A stretch of DNA of 64,000 nucleotides, taken from contig OZ251222.1 of the NCBI GenBank assembly GCA_965240325.2, positions 4,960,001-5,024,000 of the forward strand, written 5' to 3'. This stretch comes from Rebecca billardiae RCC1528. Lineage: Eukaryota > Protista > Haptophyta. Positions 1 through 13,178 of the stretch are shown here, piece by piece (the stretch's first letter is position 1; the number at the start of each line of letters is the position of its first letter). The translations under genes and the position numbers were made by a program. The notes under the pieces were generated by a model. The model worked only from the letters and a program-made list of their open reading frames with translations. It searched no databases and was not told the DNA's origin.

Positions 1-43
1 CATCCGCCTGACAATGTACCAAATGTCATTGGGTGTACCGCCA

Positions 44-2678
44 CACAGTGCCGGAAAACTGCTCAGGGTGACGTTTTAAGTTGTCCGCACCACTAGTCGA
101 ATCATCGGACAATTCTGAAGCGGTGCGCCTAAATTCGGCGCACCATAGGCGCGTCGAATCGTGGCACAGACCTTGGTAGCAGGCCACACCTGAGCGCGCT
201 GCGCGCGCCGACGCGCGCTCGGCGCGGGCAAAAAATCATGCGCCGTTGGCATTACGCAGCCCCGCGCAGCGCTGTGCTCGAGCTCGGCGGCGGCGAAAGC
301 GGGCGGGCGCACACGGCGGTGCCCGTGCGCGCTGCTCCGAGCGCAGCTGCGGCCACCCCGGCGGCATAACGCCGGTCGAGGGCACGAAAACCGATTTTTC
401 GGGAAAATGCAGAGCAGCGGCGCCCGAGCGCGCCCGAGCTCGTCGCAGCACAGTCTCCTGGTGGCTGCGCCCCGTGAAGCCACGCCACGCGGGGCGCTGG
501 CGTGCGCGTGGCCTGCGCCCACCGTGCGCTGCCCGATCATGGCCGTCGACCGCTCCGAGCGCCTCACCACGCGTGCTCGAGCCCACCGATACTGACGCCC
601 GAGCACGGTGCCGGCAGCGCTCGCAGGTGGGCGTCGGAGAAAACACGCCGGCCGAACGAGCTTGAAGCGTCCGCCGCGATGCCAACGGCAGCGGACGACG
701 TGCGCGCCACCTCGGCGCCAGTCGCCCAGCCCTTGCGCGGCGGTGCGGGCTCGCTCGTTCGCCGCCATCAGCTGCGCGCGCGCAGCCCGATCACTGCCCG
801 CTGGTTCTGTTGTCGAGCAGCTGCGGCCTGCCACGCGCACTGCCGGACATTGAGCCACAGCGCGAGCACGCGCCTCGTCTGGCACGCGCGAGCACTCAGC
901 ATCGTGCGTGGCCACCATGACGCGCCCATCTGCGCCAGCAGCGATGAGCACGCCGCCGTTCAGCTCGCATCGGGCTCGCTCGCGACGCAGCAACGCGCGG
1001 CCGTAGCGGCAGCAGCGGCGCCGTCGAGCACGCGCAGCAAACAAATATGCAGCGCGGGCGAGTCGACGGTCTGGAAAATGCGCGATCACGCCACAGCAGG
1101 CTGGCAGAGCCCGCCCGAGCTGCAGCATGCCGTAGGTGCTGCCCCAAGCTCTCGACTGCCCGTAAGCGGCGGCATGTGCGGCGGCGCCGGCGGCGGCCAT
1201 GCTGCCACGCCGTTGCGCGCCGCGGGGCGCCGTCGGCACCTCTGTGGTGAAGCGCACAGAGCTCGAGCCCACGGGGGCTGGCGACCGTCAAACCGACACC
1301 CCATGACGCGGGGCTGCGTGCGCCAGCTGCGCGCACTCCGTGGGCCCACCTAGCCCGCTCGAGCAGCTCGCCTTGGGTGCGCGCAGCGGCTCGAGCACAC
1401 TGGTATGGGACGCCTGCCTGCGGTGCCGCCGAGCACATGCGGCCGACGGTCACTCAGCACGGGCGACTCGACGGCGGCGAGCAGGCGCGACGGCCTCGCC
1501 GCGCCGCGGAAAAGCCTGCCCGGGCTGCAGCACGCCGTAGGAGCAGCCCAGCGCCCTCCTCCGCCCTCCAGCTTCGGCGCGCGCAGCAGGCCCGGCGGCG
1601 GCCATGCTGGCGTGCCCAAGCATGAAGATGGGCGCGGCCGGCCGCGCCGTCGCAAAGCGCGCAGAACTCGAGCTCGGGGGGGCGGACGGCCGCCAAACTG
1701 GCGCGGCAGGACGTGGCACTGCGTGCGCCAGCTACGCGCACCCGCTGCGCCCGCGTGGCCCGTGCGAGCGCCGCGCCTCGAGCACACGCAGCTGCTCGAC
1801 ACAGCCACGGCAGTGTGGCTTGTGCGCGTGCACGTGATCAGTCTCAGCTCTGAGGCGCGCGCTCAGGAGGGCTGCGGCCGGGCCGAGCGCGATCTGCGCG
1901 GACGGTACAGCCTGGCGGCTCATGCCAGCCAGCCCAAAGCCCGCTCCGCCATCCGCGTCATGGCGCTCCAGCCTCTCGCGTGCTGCGCTGCAGCCGCGCT
2001 CGGCAAACGGACGTCGCCCAGCCCGCCTTGCACGCGGCTGAGCAGTGGCAGCCAGGCGAAGCGTCGTCGCGGGCGAGGCTGCGCTGGGTGATGCGGCTCG
2101 GGTCGGTGGGCAAGTCGCACCCCGCCGTCGGTCGCCTCCACGCCTCAGGCTCGCTCGAGGTCAAAGACAACTGCGCGGCGCGGCGTTTGCGCGGGCGGGC
2201 CGCGGGCGTGGCGGGGTGTACGCGTGCAATGTCACAGCCTCCCACACAATTTCAGGAGGGTGAGACGCACCGCCAGCGGCACCCGCACACAATCCCACCC
2301 TGCGCGAGCCACCTGCCGTGTCGACTGAAGCATCAGGCTCGGGCGCAACCGCGGGCGGTGCATGCAAGAAGCTCGCGAAACGCACCGCGCGCGCCGTGAG
2401 GGCGAAAGGAGAGCACCCGTCAGGGTGGCGAGGAACTTGCCCAGCGCCACGCGGAAGACGACCCCAGCCCGCGTCGACGCATAGTCGGGCCCGCGAGCAG
2501 CCTCGTCGGTCTTCGCCGAGTAGATCGCGCCGCGAGCCGAGGCACCGCTCGTTTGAGGCTCCGTCCGCCGCGAAGTCGCGGCTTCCACCCGAGTTCCACT
2601 GTCCGGCCGAGACCGGATTCGCTGACTCGAGCTGCGGACCGTCCGAAGCGTCACGGAAAATTCCAATCCTGCACTGTG
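44..2678. mobile_element. Non-autonomous DNA transposon, copy 1 (CACAGTG termini, 2-bp TSD CA)
   Basis: Starts CACAGTGCCGGA (44) and ends TCCTGCACTGTG (2678). Flanked by CA (42-43) and CA (2679-2680). A full-length inverted second copy lies at 3787-6420. Confidence 0.85.
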
Positions 2679-3786
2679 CATGTACACTTTGGTACATAAA
2701 TGGTACACTTTGGTACATTTCATGAGTGTACCAACGTGTACCAACCATGTACCAGTTTGCACACAAAAGTGTACCAAGTGTACCAACTCCTCCCTGATAA
2801 TGTACCAACTGCTCCCCAAAGTGTACCAACTTGTCCCAGGGTGTACCAAAAAATGTACCAACTCGTCCTGAAAATGTACCAATAAGTGTACCAAATTTCC
2901 GCGGAATGTACCAACTTGGTCCAGGGTGTACCAACAGTGTACCAACTCGTCCTGAAAATGTACCAAGTGTACCAAATTTCCGCTGAATGTACCAACTCGG
3001 CCCAGCAGGGTGTACCACAAGTGTACCAACTCCGGCACGAGTGTACCATCTGGCATCTACTGAACCAGCCGTCCGGGAAGGTCAAGGTGCGCCCGTCCAT
3101 CCATCCATGGCTCTGATGCTCGTCGTGGGGGCGCTCGTCTTCGACCGCCACGAACATCGCTGCGGCGAGTGGTTGCTGATCCCCTTCCACACGATGACGC
3201 ACGCTCTGCTCGCGTTTTCTTCCGCCCGCCCGCTAGCTGTGGCACCGCTACCGCCACGCAGCGTTGCAGCTCTGCTGCCAATTACAAGCGCCGTCTCGAT
3301 GGGTACGCGCCTGATGGTGCTGCTTACGCTGGCTACGCCGAGTGCGCGTCGTGGCTGCTAGAACACGCGCGCTGGGAGGCCCATCGTCATTTGCGGATCA
3401 TCGTGGACAAACTGTGTGAGGATGTACCAGGGGCAGGGATTCTGGGTGTACCAGGTACACCCAGGAAAGTGTACCAGCCGTCTGAATCGCCGACGATGGT
3501 ACACTATATTGGTACATTCATGAAAAGTTGGTACATTGATGGTACATTGGGGGACGGTTGGTACACATGGTATGGTACATTTGGTACATCGTTATTGGGA
3601 CACATTGGTACATTCTTCGGACGAGTTGGTACATTTGGGAGGAGTTGGTACATCAGGTAATGTACCGGCCAACATGTGCTATGTGGATGTACCAAAGTGT
3701 ACCATGGTACACCCACTGACATTTGGTACATATTGTCAGGATGCGTTGGTACACTTTGGTACACTATTGGTACACCATTGGTACAC
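2679..3786. repeat. Degenerate TGTACCA/TGGTACA motif array (host of the insertions; continues at 1-43, 6421-6454 and 12693-12755)
   Basis: Roughly 55-60 GTAC-cored motifs by hand count across all segments. They are mostly TGTACCA in 2726-3050 and mostly TGGTACA in 3495-3786, with a unique core at about 3050-3420. A higher-order repeat of about 85 bp lies in 2840-3015. Confidence 0.9.
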
Positions 3787-6420
3787 CACAGTGCCGGATT
3801 GGAATTTTCCGTGACGCTTCGGACGGTCCGCTACTCCGTCAGCGAATCCCGTCTCGGCCGGACAGTGGAAGCTCGCCGCGGAAGCGGGCGACTTTGGCGG
3901 ACGGAGGGACAAACGAGCGGGCTGCCTCGCTCGCGGCGCGACCTACTCCGCGAAGACCGACGAGGCTGCTCGCGGACCCGACTATGCGTCGACGCGGGCT
4001 GGGGTCGTCTTCCGCGTGGCGCTGGGCAAGTTCCTCGCCGCCCTGACGGGTGCTCTCCTTTCGCCCTCACGGCGCGCGCGGTGCGAGCGCGCCGCCGCCC
4101 GCATGCGCCGCGCGCGTTTGCGCCCGAGCCTGATGCCTCAGCAGACGTGGCGGGTGGCTCGCGCGGGGTGGGATTGGGCGCTGTTGCCGCTGGCGGTGCG
4201 TCTCACCCTCCTGAATTGCCATGGGAGGCTGTGAATTGCCAAGTGTACACCCCGCCACGCCCGCGGCGCGCTCGCGAACGCTCCGCGCCGCGCAGTTATC
4301 TTCGACCTCGAGCGAGCCTGGCGCGTGGAGGCGACCGACGGCGGGGTGCGACTTGCCCACCGACCCGAGCCGCATCACCCAGCGCAGCCTCGCCCGCGAC
4401 GACGCTTCGCCTGGCTGCCACTGCTCAGCCGCGTGCAAGGCGGGCTGGGCGACGTCTTTGCCGAGCGCGGCTGCAGCGCAGCACGCGAGAGGCTGGAGCG
4501 CCATGACGCGGATGGCGGAGCGGGCTTTGGGCTGGCTGGCATGAGCCGCCAGGCTGTACCGTCCGCGCAGATCGCGCTCGGCCCGGCCGCAGCCCTCCTG
4601 AGCGCGCGCCTCAGAGCTGAGACTGATCACGTGCACGCGCACAAGCCACACTGCCGTGGCTGTGTCGAGCAGCTGCGTGTGCTCGAGGCGCGGCGCTCGC
4701 ACGGGCCACGCGGGCGCAGCGGGTGCGCGCAGCTGGCGCACGCATTGCCACGTCCTGCCGCGCCAGTTTGGCGGCCGTCCGCCCCCCCGAGCTCGAGTTC
4801 TGCGCGCTTTGCGACGGCGCGGCCGGCCGCGCCCGTCTTCATGCTTGGGCACGCCAGCATGGCCGCCGCCGGGCCTGCTGCGCGCGCCGAAGCTGGAGGG
4901 CGGAGGAGGGCGCTGGGCTGCTCCTACGGCGTGCTGCAGCCCGGGCAGGCTTTTCCGCGGCGCGGCGAGGCCGTCGCGCCTGCTCGCCGCCGTCGAGTCG
5001 CCCGTGCTGAGTGACCGTCGGCCGCATGTGCTCGGCGGCACCGCAGGCAGGCGTCCCATACCAGTGTGCTCGAGCCGCTGCGCGCACCCAAGGCGAGCTG
5101 CTCGAGCGGGCTAGGTGGGCCCACGGAGTGCGCGCAGCTGGCGCACGCAGCCCCGCGTCATGGGGTGTCGGTTTGACGGTCGCCAGCCCCCGTGGGCTCG
5201 AGCGCTGTGCGCTTCACCGCGGAGGTGCCGGCGGCGCCCCGCGGCGCGCAACGGCGGGGCAGCATGGCCGCCGCCGGCGCCGCCGCACATGCAGCCGCTT
5301 ACGGGCAGTCGAGAGCTTGGGGCAGCACCTACGGCATGCTGCAGCTCGGGCGGGCTCTGCCAGCCTGCTGTGGCGTGATCGCGCGTTTTCCAGACCGTCG
5401 ACTCGCCCGCGCTGCATATTTGTTTGCCGCGCGTGCTCGACGGCGCTGCTGCTGCCGCTACGCCCGCGCGTTGCTGCGTCGCGAGCGAGCCCGATGCGAG
5501 CTGAACGGCGGCGTGCTAATCGCTGCTGGCGCAGATGGGCGCGTCATGGTGGCCACGCACGATGCTGAGTGCTCGCGCGTGCCAGACGAGGCGCGTGCTC
5601 GCGCTGTGGCTCAATGTCCGGCAGTGCGCGTGGCAGGCCGCAGCTGCTCGACAACAGAACCAGCGGGCAGTGATCGGGCTGCGCGCGCGCAGCTGATGGC
5701 GGCGAACGAGCGAGCCCGCACCGCCGCGCAAGGGCTGGGCGACTGGCGCCGAGGTGGCGCGCACGTCGTCCGCTGCCGTTGGCATCGCGGCGGACGCTTC
5801 AAGCTCGTTCGGCCGGCGTGTTTTCTCCGACGCCCACCTGCGAGCGCTGCCGGCACCGTGCTCGGGCGTCAGTATCGGCGGGCTCGAGCACGCGTGGTGA
5901 GGCGCTCGGAGCGGTTGACGGCCATGGTCGGGCAGCGCACGGTGGGCGCAGGCCACGCGCACGCCAGCGCCCCGCGTGGCGTGGCTTCACGGGGCGCAGC
6001 CACCAGGAGACTGTGCTGCGACGAGCTCGGGCGCGCTCGGGCGCTGCTGCTCTGCATTTTCCCGAAAAATCGGTTTTCGTGCCCTCGACCGGCGGCATGC
6101 CGCCGTGGTGGCCGCAGCTGCGCTCGGAGCAGCGCGCAAGGGCACCGCCGTGTGCGCCCGCCCGCTTTCGCCGCCGCCGAGCTCGAGCACAGCGCTGCGC
6201 GGGGCTGCGTAATGCCAACGGCGCATGATTTTTTGCCCGCGCCGAGCGCGCGTCGGCGCGCGCAGCGCGCTCAGGCGTGGCCTGCTACCAAGGTCTGTGC
6301 CACGATTCGACGCGCCTATGGTGCGCCGAATTTAGGCGCACCGCTTCAGAATTGTCCGATGATTCGACTAGTGGTGCGGACAACTTAAAACGTCACCCTG
6401 AGCCGTTTTCCGGCACTGTG
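3787..6420. mobile_element. Non-autonomous DNA transposon, copy 2, inverted relative to copy 1 (2-bp TSD AC)
   Basis: Starts CACAGTGCCGGATTGG (3787) and ends TTTTCCGGCACTGTG (6420). Flanked by AC (3785-3786) and AC (6421-6422). Removing it restores TTGGTACACTATTGGTACAC, which matches the neighbouring repeat unit. Confidence 0.88.
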
Positions 6421-6614
6421 ACTATTGGTACACTTGGTACATCTCTAACATGTACACAGCAACGACTTCTCTTTTTAAAGCGGCCGTTAGCGTGTCCATC
6501 GGCCGGATTATTTTACGGAAAATTACTATGCGCTGCGCGCGCGCGCCCAGCGGGCGGCGCGCGCGCGCGACTAGTCCCCCCTGCATGCCCTAACCGTCAG
6601 CTGCCTGATTCCCG

Positions 6615-9600
6615 CTACCCAGCCCCGCTGCCGTCGCGCGCGACATCCGCGCCGTCGCTCACCGTCGCCGAGGCCGAGCGCGCCGCCGCCCTCAATTTGC
6701 TCTTGAGTGCCGACAAGTCCTCCTCCGGAAGCCCAGCCTCCTCGCGCACGAGCTTGCGCGCCGCGATGTACTCGTCGACCAGGTCGTGCGCGCCGGCCTT
6801 CGCCTTGCGCTGCCATTCGCGCTGCCGCTTGCCCTCCTTCTTCAGCCAGAGCCGCCGCACCTTGTCGCCGAACTCCTCCTCCGCCCACGTCGCAAGCGAC
6901 ACGCGGCGCAGGAGCTGCGCGGCCGTCGAGATGTGCGGCTGCACCGTCGACTTCTTCCCCTCGGCATACTCGCGGACGAACGAGTCGAGCGACTTGCGCG
7001 CGTTCACGAGCGGCATCGCCCGCTTGGTCACCTGCACGAAGTGCTCCTGCACCTGCTCGTCCGCGAGCTGCACGAGGTGGCCCCACCGCCTGATCAGCAG
7101 AGGCAAGACGAACCGCGCGATCGTCTTGTACTGCGAGGTGACCGGCTTGAGGACGAACAGGTCGAGCGCCTCGACCCACGCCGTCGCGGCTGCCTCAACC
7201 TCGTCCGCACGCTTCGCGCGGCCATCGTCATCGTCCGTGTAGCCGCGCGAGGAGACGAGGTCGTGCAGCTGCCACGTGAGCATGAGCAGGCGGCAGAAGA
7301 GTGCCATGCGCGGCATGTCCGCGATCTCGGCCTTCAACTGCGCCTCGTCGTCAAAGCCGATCTCGTCCATCATCTCGCGCTCCTCCTCGTCCTGCATGTC
7401 CGAGATGCGCGCGTCCTCGTCGCCGCTGTCCGCCGCGCCCGCGCTGCTCGCGCCGTCGAGATCCGCGTCGATCTTCCACACGACCTGCACCAACGCCCAG
7501 AAGACCGCGTGCGTGCGCAGCAGCGAGATGCCGTCGCCGCGGAGGTCGGGCACGCCGATCTCGTTGGTGCGCGTGCGCCGCTTGGGCACTCGCACAGGCA
7601 CGCCCGCGTTCTTGAACAGGACGATCAGGTCGTACTTGGTGAGCGGCGCGTCGCGGCCGTACAGCTCGTCCACCTCCCTCCACAGCGCCGACAGCACCGG
7701 CTTGAAAGTGTCGTGCTTGAAGTGCATGATGCCGGGGAAGTAGTTGACGTGCTCGAGCTCCAGCTGCGGTAGCAGCCACTGGTTCTCGTGCAGCTTCTGG
7801 TCGACGATGCGCTCGGCGTCCTTCGAGTCGTCGGCGAGAAGGCGGCGGCGCTTGGTCATCTCGGCGTCGCACTCGCCCTGGTCGGCAGGCGTGACCTTGC
7901 ACGCAGGGCACGTCACGCCCGGGTCCGCGTGGCACAGCGCGCGCGCGCGCTTGTACGTGCGCAGCCGCCACTGAGGCGAGCCGCCGTCCGCGCCCGCCTC
8001 CTTGACCGCCCACACGTTGAAGCGGAGCGGCGAGACGTTGTGCGAGCCCTGGCCGGCGAGGCTGGCAAGGTTGACATAATCGCCGGTGTACGTGATGATG
8101 GCCTTCTGCTCCTCCGCGTAGTCGGCCGCCTCGCCGCCGCCGCCAAAACCGCCGCCGGCCGCGCCGCCCGCCGCGCCGGCAGCGCCGGCCGCGCCGGCCG
8201 CGCCGGCCGCGCCGCCGGCCGCGGCGGCCGCGGCGGCCGCGGCGGCCGCGCCGCCGGCCGTGCCCGCGCTCGGGTTGCCAGCCGCGCTGCTCGCCGCGCC
8301 GCCGGCCGCGCCACCGGCCGCGCGGACGCCAGCGCCGGCGGTGCCGCCAGCCACGCCGCTGCCGCTGCCGCTGCCGCCCGCGCCGCCCGCGCCGCCCGCG
8401 CCGCCGCCAGCGCCCGCGCCCGCGTTACCAGCCGCGCCGCCGGCAGCGCCGCCGGCCGCGCGGACGCCAGCGCCGGCGGTGCCGCCAGCCACGCCGCTGC
8501 CGCTGCCGCCCGCGCCGCCCGCGCCGCCCGTGCCGCCGGCCGTGCCGCCGGCCGTGCCGCCGGCCGCGCCGCCGGCCGCGCCGCGGGCCTCGCCGCGGCC
8601 CGCGCCGCCGGCCGCGCCGGCTGTGACGGCCGCGGCCGCGCCGCCGGCCGCGCCGGCCACACGTGCGGTGGCGGCAGCAGGCGGCGTCGGTCGCGGCGGA
8701 AGCAGGCCGCTCCGGATCACGTCATTGATCGCGTCGGCGTGCGCACTCCATAACTCGGACATGTCCGAGTCCGGCCGCTCCGAGATGGCGATCGCCTCTG
8801 ACGACGCGAGCGCGCCGTAGTTGACGCCCCAGCCGTTGCGCACGATGGCGATCGTGGCCGTGCGCGAGTGAGCCGTGTTGCCCGCGTCCGCCGAGAGGAG
8901 GAGGACGTGCGGCTGCCCGCGCGGGCGCGCGGACTTGCCGTTGCGCTCCGAGCGATCCAGCACGGCGTGCACGGCCTGCGCCCACGGCCGCGCCGCCGAC
9001 TCGCTGCCGATCATGAGCACGCCCGCGCCCGCGTGCTCGCGATCGCGCTGCGCGACCTCTCGAGAGCCAGCCGCCGGCGGCGGGATCGGGTGGCGGATCG
9101 GCTCGCGGCCGAAGCCGCCGCGGAAGACGGTGCGAGCCGAGTGCTCGCCCGTCACCGGGTGGATCTCCTTCCCCACCCACTCGCGCCACGTGTCGAACTG
9201 CGCGTCCGTGACGTTCTTCGAGACGAGGTAGCCGGCGACGTCGTGGTGCGTCTGATGAGATTGAATCTCGCGCACAACGCCCACTGCGCCGCGGCGCTGC
9301 TGGAGGTAGGCGTGCCTCGCCCACGGCTTGCGCGAGCCGTCGTCTGCGCCCTCGAGCATCTCGTGCAGCACGAGGTCCATCACGTCGTCGGGCGTGCCAC
9401 GCAGGATGTGCTCGATATGGTCCGCCTCCCCCCGCCTGCGCTTGCGGCACGCGTTGCTCGAGACCGAGAGAGATGGGCGCTGAGCGCGCTGCCGATGAGC
9501 GCCGTCCAGCCCGTTCAGCTCGGCGAGGTGCTCGAACTTGCCGGCGGCTCGGTCGGCGCGCTTGCGCGCGGCGTCCTTGTCGCGCTTGAGCTCGACAAGC

Positions 9601-11342
9601 TGCGACTGCTGCTCGTCGCAGAGCGACTGGGCGTGCGCGCACTGCTGCTCGAGCAGCTGCTGCGCGTGCAGCGCAGCCGCGAGCTCGTGCTCGACGCCGC
9701 TCAGCGCGTCAGCGGCGATGTGCTCGGTCGCGGTGAGGCGGCGCTCCAACTCGAGGGCCCGATCGCGCTGCGCGTCGGCGGCGCGCTGCGCAGCTGCGGC
9801 CCGCGCGTTCGCCTCTTCGAGATCGCGCCGAAGCTTCGCCTGCGCCTGCTCCGCCTCGGCGTCGTGGCGGGTGCGCGCATCCGCGCTGTGCCCGGCGCGG
9901 TACCCGGCGAGCACAGCGCGCCTCTCCGCGGCAGCAGCGGCGGCGCGCGCGGCGGCGATCCGGTCGAGGGCCTCGCGCTCGATGTTCTCGCACTCGAGCT
10001 TGACGGCGGCGATCACCACGTCGAGAACCGGCTCGAGATCGACGGCGGCCGAGTTGACGATGTCCTCGCGCTGCCGCACCGCGTCGTCGCGCTCGCGCTC
10101 GAGCTCGCCGTTGAAGTGCTCGAGCTCGGTCACACGTGTGCGCAGCGAGGTGAGCTCGAGCTCGGAAGGGACGCTGCGCGTGCTGTGCGAGCGCCGCAAC
10201 TGCTGCTCGAGCTCGGCCACGTGCTGCAGCTCGGCCATGCGCCTTCGACCCCGTGCTGTCTGCTCGTCCGCCTCTGCCTCGGGCGTCGGCGCCACGCTGC
10301 CAGCCGAGCGCGTGAGAGGCCGCTGGCGGGTGGGCGCGGCCGAGAGCAGCACGGCAGGCGGCGGCGACATGAAGGCGGGCGAGGCGACGGCAGGTGACCT
10401 CGGCGGCAGCAGCTCTTCCGCCGACCCACCGACGAACGGCTGCGCCGCCGCGCCAGCGAGGAGGAGTGGCGGCGCGGGCTGGCGGGAGGCGCTGCGCGTG
10501 ACCGCGGGCGACGGCGCAGCGGCAGCAGGAAAGCTCAAGGCGGAGGAGGCGTTGGTAGTGGCGGGCGAGAAGACGAGGTGGTCGGCGTGAGCGGGAAGAG
10601 ACGAGAAGCGGGCAGCGACGACGGCGGGAGACAAATCGGCGGCGGCGGCGGCGGCTGATGCCGCCGCCTCGCCGCCATCAGCTCGAAGGAGAGCGAGCGC
10701 GCGCGCGGTCGGTGGACGGGCGGCATCATGCGGCGAGGACAGCGGCTGCGGCTGCGGCCGCGGCCGCGGCCGCGGCCGCGGCTGCGGCGGCTGCACGAGC
10801 GGCGGAGGCAGGTGCGGAGGCGCCGACGGCAGCTGCGGCGGTGGCGGAAGCGACGGCAGCGGCGGCGGCCCCAACGGAGGCAGCGGCTGGGTGTCCGCGA
10901 CCGCGTAGGGCATCACGGCGGCGGACGATGGATCGGATGGCGCGTCGGCGCAGAGGCCGGGCGTGAGACCGAGGACTGGAACATGCGAGAGAGGCTGAGA
11001 ATGAGAATGCAGATGGGCATGCGTGGGATCGAGGGCAGAGAGATCGAGGGGGGGATGCGGCGCGACCGCGCCGTCACCAGCTGGCGCGCGACGCCATCGG
11101 GCGCTGCTCGCTGCTCGGCGAGTGGCGGTCAGCTGCTCGCGCTGCGCGCGGCGCGCTTTCCAGTCCGCGCGCTTGCGCCGTGAGACGTCGGACTCGGGCG
11201 GCGCCGCCGGTGCCGCCGCGGCGGGCGCCGCGGCAGGCGCTGCCGGCGGCGCGCCCGTGAGCTCCGACGGGCCCTTCGTCACAGACGGCGTGCGCCGCCA
11301 GCCCCGCCTCCGCCGCGGCGCATCGAGACGCCCTGCGCGCAC
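6615..11342 (-). CDS. RAG1/Transib-like DDE transposase (5' end uncertain, probably spliced)
   Basis: Motifs are collinear with the RAG1 core as recalled. RPSLSVSSNACRKRR ~ NBD RPRQHLLSLTRRAQKHR. VTDAQFDTWREWV ~ LSCSQYHKMYRTV. LLLSADAG ~ KESCDG (D at 8886-8888). PDSD ~ DESD. YTGDYVNLASLAGQ ~ GYDEKLVREVEG (D at 8079-8081). PGIMHFK ~ DALHCD. LRGDGISLL ~ MNGNFARKL. LADEQVQEHF...NARKS ~ ASEGNES...NARQS (E at 7044-7046). An N-terminal coiled coil precedes these. Confidence 0.75.
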   Translation of the reverse strand: MRAGRLDAPRRRRGWRRTPSVTKGPSELTGAPPAAPAAAPAAAAPAAPPESDVSRRKRADWKARRAQREQLTATRRAASSARWRRAPAGDGAVAPHPPLDLSALDPTHAHLHSHSQPLSHVPVLGLTPGLCADAPSDPSSAAVMPYAVADTQPLPPLGPPPLPSLPPPPQLPSAPPHLPPPLVQPPQPRPRPRPRPQPQPLSSPHDAARPPTARALALLRADGGEAAASAAAAAADLSPAVVAARFSSLPAHADHLVFSPATTNASSALSFPAAAAPSPAVTRSASRQPAPPLLLAGAAAQPFVGGSAEELLPPRSPAVASPAFMSPPPAVLLSAAPTRQRPLTRSAGSVAPTPEAEADEQTARGRRRMAELQHVAELEQQLRRSHSTRSVPSELELTSLRTRVTELEHFNGELERERDDAVRQREDIVNSAAVDLEPVLDVVIAAVKLECENIEREALDRIAAARAAAAAAERRAVLAGYRAGHSADARTRHDAEAEQAQAKLRRDLEEANARAAAAQRAADAQRDRALELERRLTATEHIAADALSGVEHELAAALHAQQLLEQQCAHAQSLCDEQQSQLVELKRDKDAARKRADRAAGKFEHLAELNGLDGAHRQRAQRPSLSVSSNACRKRRRGEADHIEHILRGTPDDVMDLVLHEMLEGADDGSRKPWARHAYLQQRRGAVGVVREIQSHQTHHDVAGYLVSKNVTDAQFDTWREWVGKEIHPVTGEHSARTVFRGGFGREPIRHPIPPPAAGSREVAQRDREHAGAGVLMIGSESAARPWAQAVHAVLDRSERNGKSARPRGQPHVLLLSADAGNTAHSRTATIAIVRNGWGVNYGALASSEAIAISERPDSDMSELWSAHADAINDVIRSGLLPPRPTPPAAATARVAGAAGGAAAAVTAGAAGGAGRGEARGAAGGAAGGTAGGTAGGTGGAGGAGGSGSGVAGGTAGAGVRAAGGAAGGAAGNAGAGAGGGAGGAGGAGGSGSGSGVAGGTAGAGVRAAGGAAGGAASSAAGNPSAGTAGGAAAAAAAAAAAGGAAGAAGAAGAAGAAGGAAGGGFGGGGEAADYAEEQKAIITYTGDYVNLASLAGQGSHNVSPLRFNVWAVKEAGADGGSPQWRLRTYKRARALCHADPGVTCPACKVTPADQGECDAEMTKRRRLLADDSKDAERIVDQKLHENQWLLPQLELEHVNYFPGIMHFKHDTFKPVLSALWREVDELYGRDAPLTKYDLIVLFKNAGVPVRVPKRRTRTNEIGVPDLRGDGISLLRTHAVFWALVQVVWKIDADLDGASSAGAADSGDEDARISDMQDEEEREMMDEIGFDDEAQLKAEIADMPRMALFCRLLMLTWQLHDLVSSRGYTDDDDGRAKRADEVEAAATAWVEALDLFVLKPVTSQYKTIARFVLPLLIRRWGHLVQLADEQVQEHFVQVTKRAMPLVNARKSLDSFVREYAEGKKSTVQPHISTAAQLLRRVSLATWAEEEFGDKVRRLWLKKEGKRQREWQRKAKAGAHDLVDEYIAARKLVREEAGLPEEDLSALKSKLRAAARSASATVSDGADVARDGSGAG

Positions 11343-12136
11343 ACCTTGAGCAGCTCGCCGCTCACGTCAGCGCGCCCCTTCTCCTTCTTGAAGCGCCATG
11401 GCTGCATCAGCGCGTAGCGCTCGGCGTCGACGCTCACGCCGCCCTGCGCGTCCTGTGGCGCGTGCAGGCCGCCCTGCGCGTTGAGCGAGATCACGCCCAC
11501 GCGCACGTGCGCGAACTGCTGGTACGCGCCGTCCGGATCGAGCCGATGCATCTCGGTGTGCTCGATCGAGAGCGAGTGCACCGTGTTGATCGCCGAGAGG
11601 TGCCGGTCCGTGCGCGCGCCGCCGAGCGCGTTCGCCCGCAGCGGCTTCGGGACGCGGCGCATGCCCAGGTTGAGCCACGTCGAGATGCGCTCGGGCTGGT
11701 ACGAGCTCACGGTGCGCCGCGTGCGGTCCTTCTCTCGCGTCTCGTGCACGACGCCCTGGTCGTCGAGCGAGGTGAACATCGGCGAGTAGAGGGCGTCACG
11801 CGGGAACAGCGCCAGCTTGGCCTTGCGCAGCAGGTTGCCCTTCTTCCGGCTGCCCTTGATGGCGACGAAGTTGTTGACCTTGCGCTTGACCTCCGCCAGG
11901 TAGTTCTCGTTCGGCATGATCGAGTGGTCCACCTCGCTCGCCGCCTCGCGCGCGCGCAGCATGAGCGTCTCGTGCTCAGCCGCCTTCTCCGCGGCCGCCG
12001 CGGCCATGCGCCGCCGCACAGATGCGGCAGAGACCTTGCGCCCGATGCCGTAGCCGCCCTTCCGCTGCAGCTTGACCTTCTTCGGCTTCGCGCAGGAACG
12101 CTTGCCCTTGCCCACGGTAAGCACAGCCGTCGTCAT
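11279..12136 (-). CDS. Transposon-borne basic orphan ORF or first exon of the transposase gene
   Basis: ATG at 12136, protein-like composition with a Lys/Arg-rich N-terminus, inside the TIRs on the same strand as the transposase. Likely splice donor AAG|GTGTGC at 11345/11344. Confidence 0.6.
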   Translation of the reverse strand: MTTAVLTVGKGKRSCAKPKKVKLQRKGGYGIGRKVSAASVRRRMAAAAAEKAAEHETLMLRAREAASEVDHSIMPNENYLAEVKRKVNNFVAIKGSRKKGNLLRKAKLALFPRDALYSPMFTSLDDQGVVHETREKDRTRRTVSSYQPERISTWLNLGMRRVPKPLRANALGGARTDRHLSAINTVHSLSIEHTEMHRLDPDGAYQQFAHVRVGVISLNAQGGLHAPQDAQGGVSVDAERYALMQPWRFKKEKGRADVSGELLKVCAQGVSMRRGGGGAGGARRL

Positions 12137-13178
12137 TGCTGCGCGCGGCGAGCGCGGTCCCGCGCGGCCGCCGCCGGGCGCAGCCGCAGCAAGTTAGTCT
12201 GATGCAAATTCCCGGTCACCCATGCAAAAGTAAGCGTTCCCGCTGAGCATGTGCGTGGATCACGAGTAACCCGCCGCCTGAATACAAACTCCGCGCCCCT
12301 CCATACACTTCCTGCATCCCCGCGCGCGGCGGCGTGCAGGCGGGCGCAGATTCGCACCGTGTTACGAACAGACCTAGCAAAGTAGATCGGCGTGGCGGGT
12401 CGGGACGCGGAGCGGGTGCGGGGCAGGTGGGGGATAGGTTGGGGAACACCCGCGATTAGAGCACCGGTGGCGCAGCGGCGACGTGGACGCCGCCACACGC
12501 GCACGCACGGCGCACGCGCGCACCGGGACTTTCAACTTCGCGTCGGAGCTCTGGACGACCGTCGGTTGGTCCGAGCGGCGCGAGGAGGCTCTCGGGATTG
12601 TGGCCGGACGCCCGGGTTGAGCCGTTAACGGCCGAAAATCAATTTGTTGGAGTTTCCTTAACGGCCGCTTTAAAAAAGAAATCGTTGCTGTGTACCAATC
12701 GTGTACCAATTATGTACCAAAGTGTACCATGGTACATCCGCTTAGCTCGGTACACTCCTCATTCTGAGCTCGGTTTGGTGACACCTCCCAATATCGTGAT
12801 GCGTAGTAATCGTCGCGTATACTGCTACGCGTATACGTAACTGCTTATATCAGTCGTGCTGGCGGTATCATGGCGCCCGCCCCCGCGCCCGCCCCCTATA
12901 GCAGTATAGCGCGCAGCTATTACTAGGGAGCGCAGTCGTACTTTGACGACGATCGGGCGCACTGCGCAGCCGCGACGAATCATCAGGAGATCGACCTGCG
13001 TCGTCCTACCTGTGTCGTCAATATACATCGTCGATCATATAGAATGAATCGTATATATAATAATAAGCAGCTATATATATCACTCGTCCCGGCGCGCTTC
13101 ACATTCTATATTCATCATCAGCGCAATCATCACGCGCATCGTCGGCGCGCCGTCCCGTAGTCCGACGCGTCCGGCAGG

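Follow-up and report, generated by a model that had tools for sequence, protein, structure and literature searches.

Block-structured ends with a recombination-signal-type heptamer in a young, apparently non-autonomous transposon family of the haptophyte Rebecca billardiae

Pairs of recombination signal sequences (RSSs) are asymmetric (12/23), ProtoRAG elements duplicate 5 bp of their target, and Mirage elements duplicate 2 bp (Repbase). Within an RSS the essential positions are 1-3 of the heptamer and 5-6 of the nonamer, the nonamer being A-rich, ACAAAAACC-like and AA at positions 5-6 (PMC1131882). Transib transposons, whose ends are typically bipartite, have the terminal inverted repeat (TIR) consensus CACAATG-N23-AAAAAAATC, and their hallmark is a 5-bp target duplication together with a preference for targets rich in guanine and cytosine (GC) (PMC1131882; Kapitonov & Jurka 2005). 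Bipartite ends are also functional in ProtoRAG (PMC8289069), in which TR1 is separated from TR5 by a spacer (TRsp) of 27 or 31 bp and an asymmetric pair of ends works best (PMC8289069; Tao et al. 2019). The lineages of the wider CACTA/EnSpm-Mirage-Chapaev-Transib (CMCT) assemblage have in common CA..TG termini, target duplications of 2-5 bp and C(2)C/H(3-4)H motifs, and PlavakaA duplicates 2 bp (PMC12730594). Here we compare with these systems the ends of a transposon from the alga Rebecca billardiae RCC1528. The window, the whole stretch of DNA that was analysed, comprises 64,000 bp (GenBank assembly GCA_965240325.2, contig OZ251222.1, forward-strand positions 4,960,001 to 5,024,000), and its positions 44-6420 contain two copies of a 2.63-kb element that begins with the seven bases of the consensus RSS heptamer, CACAGTG. 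The ends of this element are built of three conserved blocks at fixed spacing, and the family to which it belongs is probably a young, non-autonomous cut-and-paste family of the CMCT assemblage that is moved in trans.

A repeat search resolved the span 44-6420 into two oppositely oriented copies of one element, the inverted arms being 44-2007 and 4457-6420 (99%), 2010-2365 and 4101-4456 (90%), and 2381-2537 and 3929-4085 (97%). Copy 2 shares 96.5% identity with copy 1 in BLAST and 95.8% in the multiple alignment, and each copy bears unlike A and B ends, that is, an imperfect TIR. An earlier note on this DNA had presented the sequences at 44-76 (CACAGTGCCGGA-AAACTGCTCAGG-GTGACGTTT) and 3787-3819 (CACAGTGCCGGA-TTGGAATTTTCC-GTGACGCTT) as the two ends of a single element; both were quoted exactly, and their first seven bases are indeed the consensus RSS heptamer, but the two sequences lie on the same strand and are the A end of copy 1 and the B end of copy 2. 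The possibility that 44-6420 is a single foldback or composite element was considered and rejected, the outer flanks being mismatched (CA against AC), each copy being flanked by a separate 2-bp duplication, and the intervening 1.1 kb being continuous with a host element, here called Z, in which both are nested. The window contains two independent insertions of one transposon family. Independent support for the element boundaries comes from a single public run, available as contigs that barely cover this locus: its contigs stop matching exactly at both element borders and run on from there into sequence flanking another copy. With so little coverage of this locus, they show neither an empty site nor an excision footprint.

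The A end, which begins CACAGTGCCGGAAAACTGCTCAGGGTGACGTTT, consists of CACAGTGCCGGA, 12 nt and GTGACGTTT, and the B end, which begins CACAGTGCAGGATTGGAATTTTCCGTGACGCTT, consists of CACAGTGCAGGA, 12 nt and GTGACGCTT; the termini read CACAGTG...CACTGTG, with CACAGTG at both ends of both copies. A third common block, GTCCGC..AGTC, occupies element positions 40-55. In an ungapped comparison the A and B ends agree at 11 of 12 bases in positions 1-12, at 1 of 12 in positions 13-24, at 8 of 9 in positions 25-33, at none of the 6 in positions 34-39 and at 13 of 16 in positions 40-55, beyond which identity (24/65 in positions 56-120) is about background. These matches are clustered, forming 17 runs as against an expectation of about 27 (permutation p = 0.0025), and the runs test retains p = 0.015 when the heptamer is left out. 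The divergent stretches, of 12 and 6 bp, have the same length at both ends and only 1 of their 18 bases in common. In the older copy 2 both ends retain blocks 1 and 2 intact, and block 3 of its B end has acquired three substitutions and one indel. The ends of the family are block-structured, with three blocks at fixed spacing, and their description in the earlier note as bipartite stands as to the conserved blocks and the unrelated spacers of equal length; the block at 40-55 raises the count to at least three.

Searches of the window's own assembly (G000; 72 Mb in 41 contigs) returned 121 matches to CACAGTGCNGGA-N12-GTGACG and none to the reversed control, so that the end pattern is not a product of chance. 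The inner motifs, GTGACGYTT-N6-GTCCGC (blocks 2 and 3), gave 132 matches, again with none in the control, and these correspond to about 66 copies of the family, 2,633-2,636 bp in length. At least 40 full-length places are near-identical to copy 1, and 27 aligned copies are 99.47-99.96% identical to it, with 56 variable columns in 2.6 kb, an indication that amplification has been very recent. It had been anticipated that the second motif and its spacing would be conserved across other copies, and they are; this near-perfect conservation reflects recent common descent, however, and not selection. Among the matches listed (at least 100 places), paired ends lie 2,633-2,640 bp apart, save for one 3,474-bp pair on contig 18. 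That variant (G000:C18:914462-917935) has an extra 840 bp over the 2.6-kb family and both ends intact, its B end being of the CCGGA type as in copy 2. Three copies with identical flanks (G000:C10:772460, 809683 and 831096) represent a segmental triplication rather than three insertions. Some copies carry end mutations at the first base or bases (TACAGTG, twice; GACAGTG; CACAGCG; CTGAGTG) and one a 5-bp insertion in the A-end spacer (G000:C1:2969990, C8:1759165, C16:1084339, C26:52191, C31:545494 and C27:1381122 for the mutated ends and spacer); if CAC and the spacing matter, such natural mutants should be immobile. Two scans of public metagenome contigs for the end pattern gave no match.

Target duplications were counted in 26 independent insertions with sequenced flanks. 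In 24 of them 2 bp are duplicated, and none of the 26 has a 5-bp flank match. The duplicated dinucleotides are of 11 different kinds, TA (8) and AT (4) being commonest. The GC content of the flanks is 31% over the nearest 10 bp and 41% over the nearest 50 bp, in a genome that, like the window on average, is about 70% GC, and the family has a strong preference for AT-rich targets. The element itself is 72% GC and contains long open reading frames (ORFs) on both strands, as would be expected of any sequence of this composition. Neither a Pfam search of these ORFs nor an Rfam search of the element found a match, and in no 300-nt window do the codon phases differ in GC by more than 0.21, compared with differences of 0.4-0.6, and third-position GC of 0.9-0.97, in the transposase ORF of the neighbouring element Y. 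Given this lack of a coding signal the 2.63-kb element appears to be non-autonomous, as the earlier note had proposed, and it has the TIRs, target duplication, multiple copies and missing transposase gene of a non-autonomous DNA transposon.

Termini and duplication length are the two features by which a non-autonomous element can be tested for membership in CMCT, and the family has both 5'-CA..TG-3' termini and, at 2 bp, a duplication within the range of the assemblage. It is most like the CMCT lineages that duplicate 2 bp, and a new non-autonomous family is the best label for it. That its ends are read by a RAG-like transposase, as the earlier note proposed, is an inference. In the mechanism envisaged, a DDE transposase supplied in trans, probably by one of the families of this genome that combine CACAG ends and a 2-bp duplication with an enzyme of RAG1 fold, would cut or nick at the CAC border. 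The catalytic core of the enzyme would hold the terminal 12-mer (block 1), a second DNA-binding surface would read GTGACGYTT, and perhaps GTCCGC too, at a fixed distance, and two equally spaced ends would be paired and integrated with a 2-bp stagger. Since the spacing is the same at both ends, such pairing would need no asymmetry of the 12/23 type.

The local representative of these CACAG-ended families is the autonomous element Y, which resembles the 2.63-kb family in its CACAG terminus, 2-bp duplication, AT-rich landing site and end length of ~33-35 bp. An exhaustive search for its transposase recovered 30 relatives, mostly fragments, and in their alignment a CxxC (CPAC), an HxxH and a W-G...EQxQE......K motif are conserved; a word-index search with residues 1100-1575 gave no match. 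The last 482 residues were modelled with AlphaFold2 on the relatives alignment (mean predicted local distance difference test score 75), and the model was compared with 48,161 representatives of the PDB. All six best fold matches were BbRAGL, RAG1 or HzTransib: amphioxus BbRAGL at Z 11.3 over 226 aligned residues, RAG1 at Z 10.9-11.2, with model residues 3-340 on RAG1 708-960 (second aspartate to glutamate), and HzTransib at Z 9.0. The next match, at Z 7.1, was an unrelated helical protein. The model supports the presence, in the same genome, of a CACAG-ended family with a transposase of predicted RAG1 fold. We know of no solved structure of a CACTA, Mirage or Chapaev transposase, so that any member of the wider clade would match RAG1 first.

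Several observations bear on Y alone. Its ORF contains a Gly/Ala-rich low-complexity insert of about 190 amino acids (about 8100-8700), just upstream of the region resembling RAG1 708-960. At ten loci the last 482 residues recur with 100% identity, the open frames there being 1,206-1,589 amino acids long. About 35 further loci (for example C3:4280092-4280656 and C8:275574-276138) carry a relative, 78% identical, in which only query residues 1-33 and 323-482 are aligned, directly next to each other; this is a high-copy, internally deleted derivative family. A distant paralogue, at 33% identity, has a 1,293-amino-acid open frame near a contig end (G000:C20:11228-12412). In another assembly (GCA_046766215.1, contig JBJNVX010059428.1) an end, CACAGCAACGAATTATTTTTTAATGCGGCCGTTA, lies at L062:2193-2242, about 160 bp downstream of a Y-transposase homologue. 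The Y ends are invariant at 31 of 35 positions relative to this end, which stands beside a transposase homologue of 68% identity, and the continuous 35-bp TIR of Y type is thus conserved across genomes.

A number of findings weigh against the interpretation that the ends of the 2.63-kb family form a block-structured signal read in trans by an enzyme of this kind. The neighbour Y has only the five terminal bases CACAG in common with the family, the ends differing beyond them as the earlier note had observed, and the TIRs of both sister families, Y (~35 bp, CACAGCAACGAYTTCT(C)TTTTTAAAGCGGCCGTTA) and a 1.8-kb family (39 bp), are continuous. The conservation of the blocks is read from one family, with two end types and one older subfamily at 96%, and the spacers may be merely positions that tolerate change. 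As to the enzyme, the Y transposase has no Pfam match and gave only noise against the PDB by sequence and by profile. Its RAG1-fold match, at Z 11, falls in a largely helical region, and for helical folds a score under about 13 calls for caution; RAG1 chains recur in a Foldseek comparison with the PDB at non-significant E values (0.6-2), and a language-model atlas yielded only weak RAG1-domain leads (0.76). Searches for a partner point the same way. The terminal 12-mer has 14 scattered matches elsewhere in the assembly, compared with 21 for the control, and none marks an autonomous element; the heptamer followed by GTGACG(YTT) at fixed or variable distance (15-19 bp) recovered family variants and chance matches only; and the inner blocks were found in no other family of the genome. 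Outside these points, the search for motif-N12-GTGACG that had been suggested as a route to an autonomous partner revealed none in the genome, neither an element with matching ends nor a partner transposase. The contigs that encode relatives of the Y enzyme include one Y-like end (that at L062) and none like those of the 2.63-kb family, and comparison of the 2.63-kb element with Y gave no blastn match and only low-complexity noise in tblastx. A solo A end at G000:C1:387831, a candidate for the start of a longer autonomous element, matches over 88 bp only before passing into a microsatellite and is a truncated fragment; the other apparent solo ends are ordinary copies with a mutated partner end. 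Within the data searched, the 2.63-kb family is an orphan.

A more ambitious proposal is that a RAG1-fold transposase integrating with a 2-bp stagger truly reads the three fixed-distance blocks as one multi-site signal, and that the combination of heptamer and distal motif at a measured distance would then be ancestral across CMCT and older than the Transib/RAG branch. We regard this as possible, though on present evidence unlikely. Somewhat more doubtful still is the alternative that the block pattern is a historical accident, in which about 12 terminal bases suffice and the inner blocks are remnants of a once perfect TIR of ~55 bp. There are only two independent end sequences to compare, the copies are too young to reveal selection, block 3 has decayed at the B end of copy 2, and sister families have continuous TIRs, all of which such an accident would accommodate. 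The mismatches, however, are clustered far beyond chance; divergent stretches of equal length with so little identity are not what random decay, with its indels, would favour; and blocks 1 and 2 have come through intact in a subfamily that has diverged by 4%.

That the ends are a true signal of RSS/Transib type, symmetric at 17/17 and recognised by an enzyme of the Transib/RAG family proper, is very improbable. The heptamer does coincide with the RSS consensus, its essential CAC standing at the cleavage border of all four ends of the two copies, the conserved blocks keep a constant distance from one another, the CACAG-ended transposase of this genome finds RAG1, BbRAGL and HzTransib as its top fold matches, and bipartite ends are known from ProtoRAG (PMC8289069) and Transib (PMC1131882). 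The duplication, on the other hand, comprises 2 bp in 24 of the 26 insertions in place of the 5-bp hallmark of Transib and RAG (PMC1131882), and the nearest 10 bp of the flanks, at 31% GC against about 70% for the genome, contrast with the GC-rich sites that both favour. The second motif, GTGACGYTT, is no A-rich nonamer and has CG at the essential positions 5-6, in agreement with the earlier observation that the 9-mer is not the canonical one. It begins 17 bp past the heptamer at both ends, a distance that reads as 12 bp only when the heptamer is taken to include the five conserved bases that follow it, and there is neither 12/23 nor 27/31 asymmetry. The Y transposase family, moreover, matches neither the RAG1 and Transib Pfam models nor PDB sequences, and its structural resemblance to RAG1 is what any enzyme of the wider clade would give while no structure from CACTA, Mirage or Chapaev is known. 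The analogy with RSSs and ProtoRAG drawn in the earlier note therefore holds for the heptamer and the fixed spacing, and is not supported by the duplication, the targets, the lack of an A-rich nonamer, the 17-bp distance or the lack of end asymmetry. A 1.8-kb family with ends CACAGTGAACACGCCCCAGCGGCG[G/A]AGCGGACAAACAAA, identical over 39 bp but for one base, was also considered as 23-RSS-like (heptamer, variable spacer, nonamer) and rejected: its ends are alike through the spacer, and the resemblance arises from a continuous TIR and not from a variable spacer. The genome has 14 ends of this family (for example C5:3437512-3439313 and C15:358094-359899). Least probable of all is another superfamily that duplicates 2 bp (PHIS/ISL2EU-like elements, for instance, or Tc1/mariner-like ones that target TA), for although the 2-bp duplication, the prevalence of TA (8/26) and the AT-rich targets would fit, the duplication is not limited to TA, CAC...GTG termini are typical of CMCT (PMC12730594), and intact CACAG-ended, 2-bp-duplicating elements with an enzyme of predicted RAG1 fold are active in the same genome.

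The surroundings of the two copies belong to a further element (Table 1). Both copies and Y are nested in Z, which ends at 12779. Removal by script of the three insertions, with one copy of each duplication, leaves a Z of about 1.46 kb and 49% GC with the ends CCAAACCGAGCTCAGAA..GGAGTGTACCGAGCTAAGCGGATGTACCATGGTACAC; its inverted arms, of 450 bp and 74% alike, are sequences in which TTGGTACA/TGTACCAA repeats abound. The three insertions lie at different, non-symmetric sites, and their clustering is most simply explained by the preference for AT-rich targets, Z being a rare AT-rich island where the genome as a whole is ~70% GC. Some 5-15 kb upstream of the window, L061 (G000:C1:4945001-4955000) is 10 kb of one very GC-rich repeat array, in which one minus-strand frame would encode a glycine-rich protein repeat.

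Table 1. Positions of the elements, their ends and their duplications in the window
Feature	Position	Strand	Remarks
Z piece	1-43	.	starts 196 bp upstream of the window (G000:C1:4959804)
Target-site duplication CA, left, copy 1	42-43	.	
Copy 1, non-autonomous 2.63-kb element	44-2678	+	A end at 44, B end at 2678
A end, block 1, CACAGTGCCGGA	44-55	+	heptamer and five bases
A end, block 2, GTGACGTTT	68-76	+	element positions 25-33
A end, block 3, GTCCGCACCACTAGTC	83-98	+	positions 40-55, 13/16 common to the B end
Internal tandem duplication	1103-1799	+	405-bp period (1103-1394 / 1508-1799, 71% alike), non-coding
B end, block 3, GTCCGCAGCTCGAGTC	2624-2639	-	
B end, block 2, GTGACGCTT	2646-2654	-	
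B end, block 1, CACAGTGCAGGA	2667-2678	-	
Target-site duplication CA, right, copy 1	2679-2680	.	
Z central piece	2681-3786	.	between copies 1 and 2
Target-site duplication AC, left, copy 2	3785-3786	.	read directly
Copy 2, inverted, older subfamily	3787-6420	-	B end 3787-3819, A end 6388-6420
Target-site duplication AC, right, copy 2	6421-6422	.	read directly
Z remaining pieces	6423-6454, 12695-12779		
Element Y, autonomous	6455-12692	-	6,238 bp; TA duplication at 6453-6454 / 12693-12694
Y transposase ORF	6615-11342	-	1,575 amino acids; last 482 predicted to fold like RAG1 708-960

What this locus offers is the precise anatomy of a non-autonomous transposon that was active very recently, in an alga of very high GC content, together with a caution, that an exact RSS heptamer at the end of a transposon does not by itself indicate a system of RAG/Transib type. 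As it stands, the element represents an ordinary new family within a known assemblage. If the multi-site signal were real, a young, high-copy algal family would be a tractable test system outside animals, and if the inner blocks proved functional it would be a convenient substrate on which to ask how RAG1-fold enzymes there measure distance along the DNA ends they act on.

In comparison with Transib and the RSS, the family is alike in its first seven bases, CACAGTG, and in a second conserved motif that follows an unrelated stretch of fixed length, and differs in its 2-bp duplication, AT-rich targets, non-A-rich 9-mer, 17-bp distance, equal spacing and third block. ProtoRAG likewise has a CAC terminus and conserved elements, with a spacer between them whose length is rigid and whose identity is low, whereas its ends are asymmetric (27 vs 31 bp) where those described here are symmetric, and it carries RAG1L and RAG2L genes. 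From the described CMCT lineages the present case departs in its algal host, in being a non-autonomous family without a partner sharing its ends, and in the local transposase, that of Y, which has no sequence-level match to any described family model, has the histidine pair HxxH in place of H(3-4)H, and places about 220 residues between HxxH and the conserved E motif. It agrees with them in its CAC..GTG termini and in a 2-bp duplication that falls within the range of the clade, as in PlavakaA.

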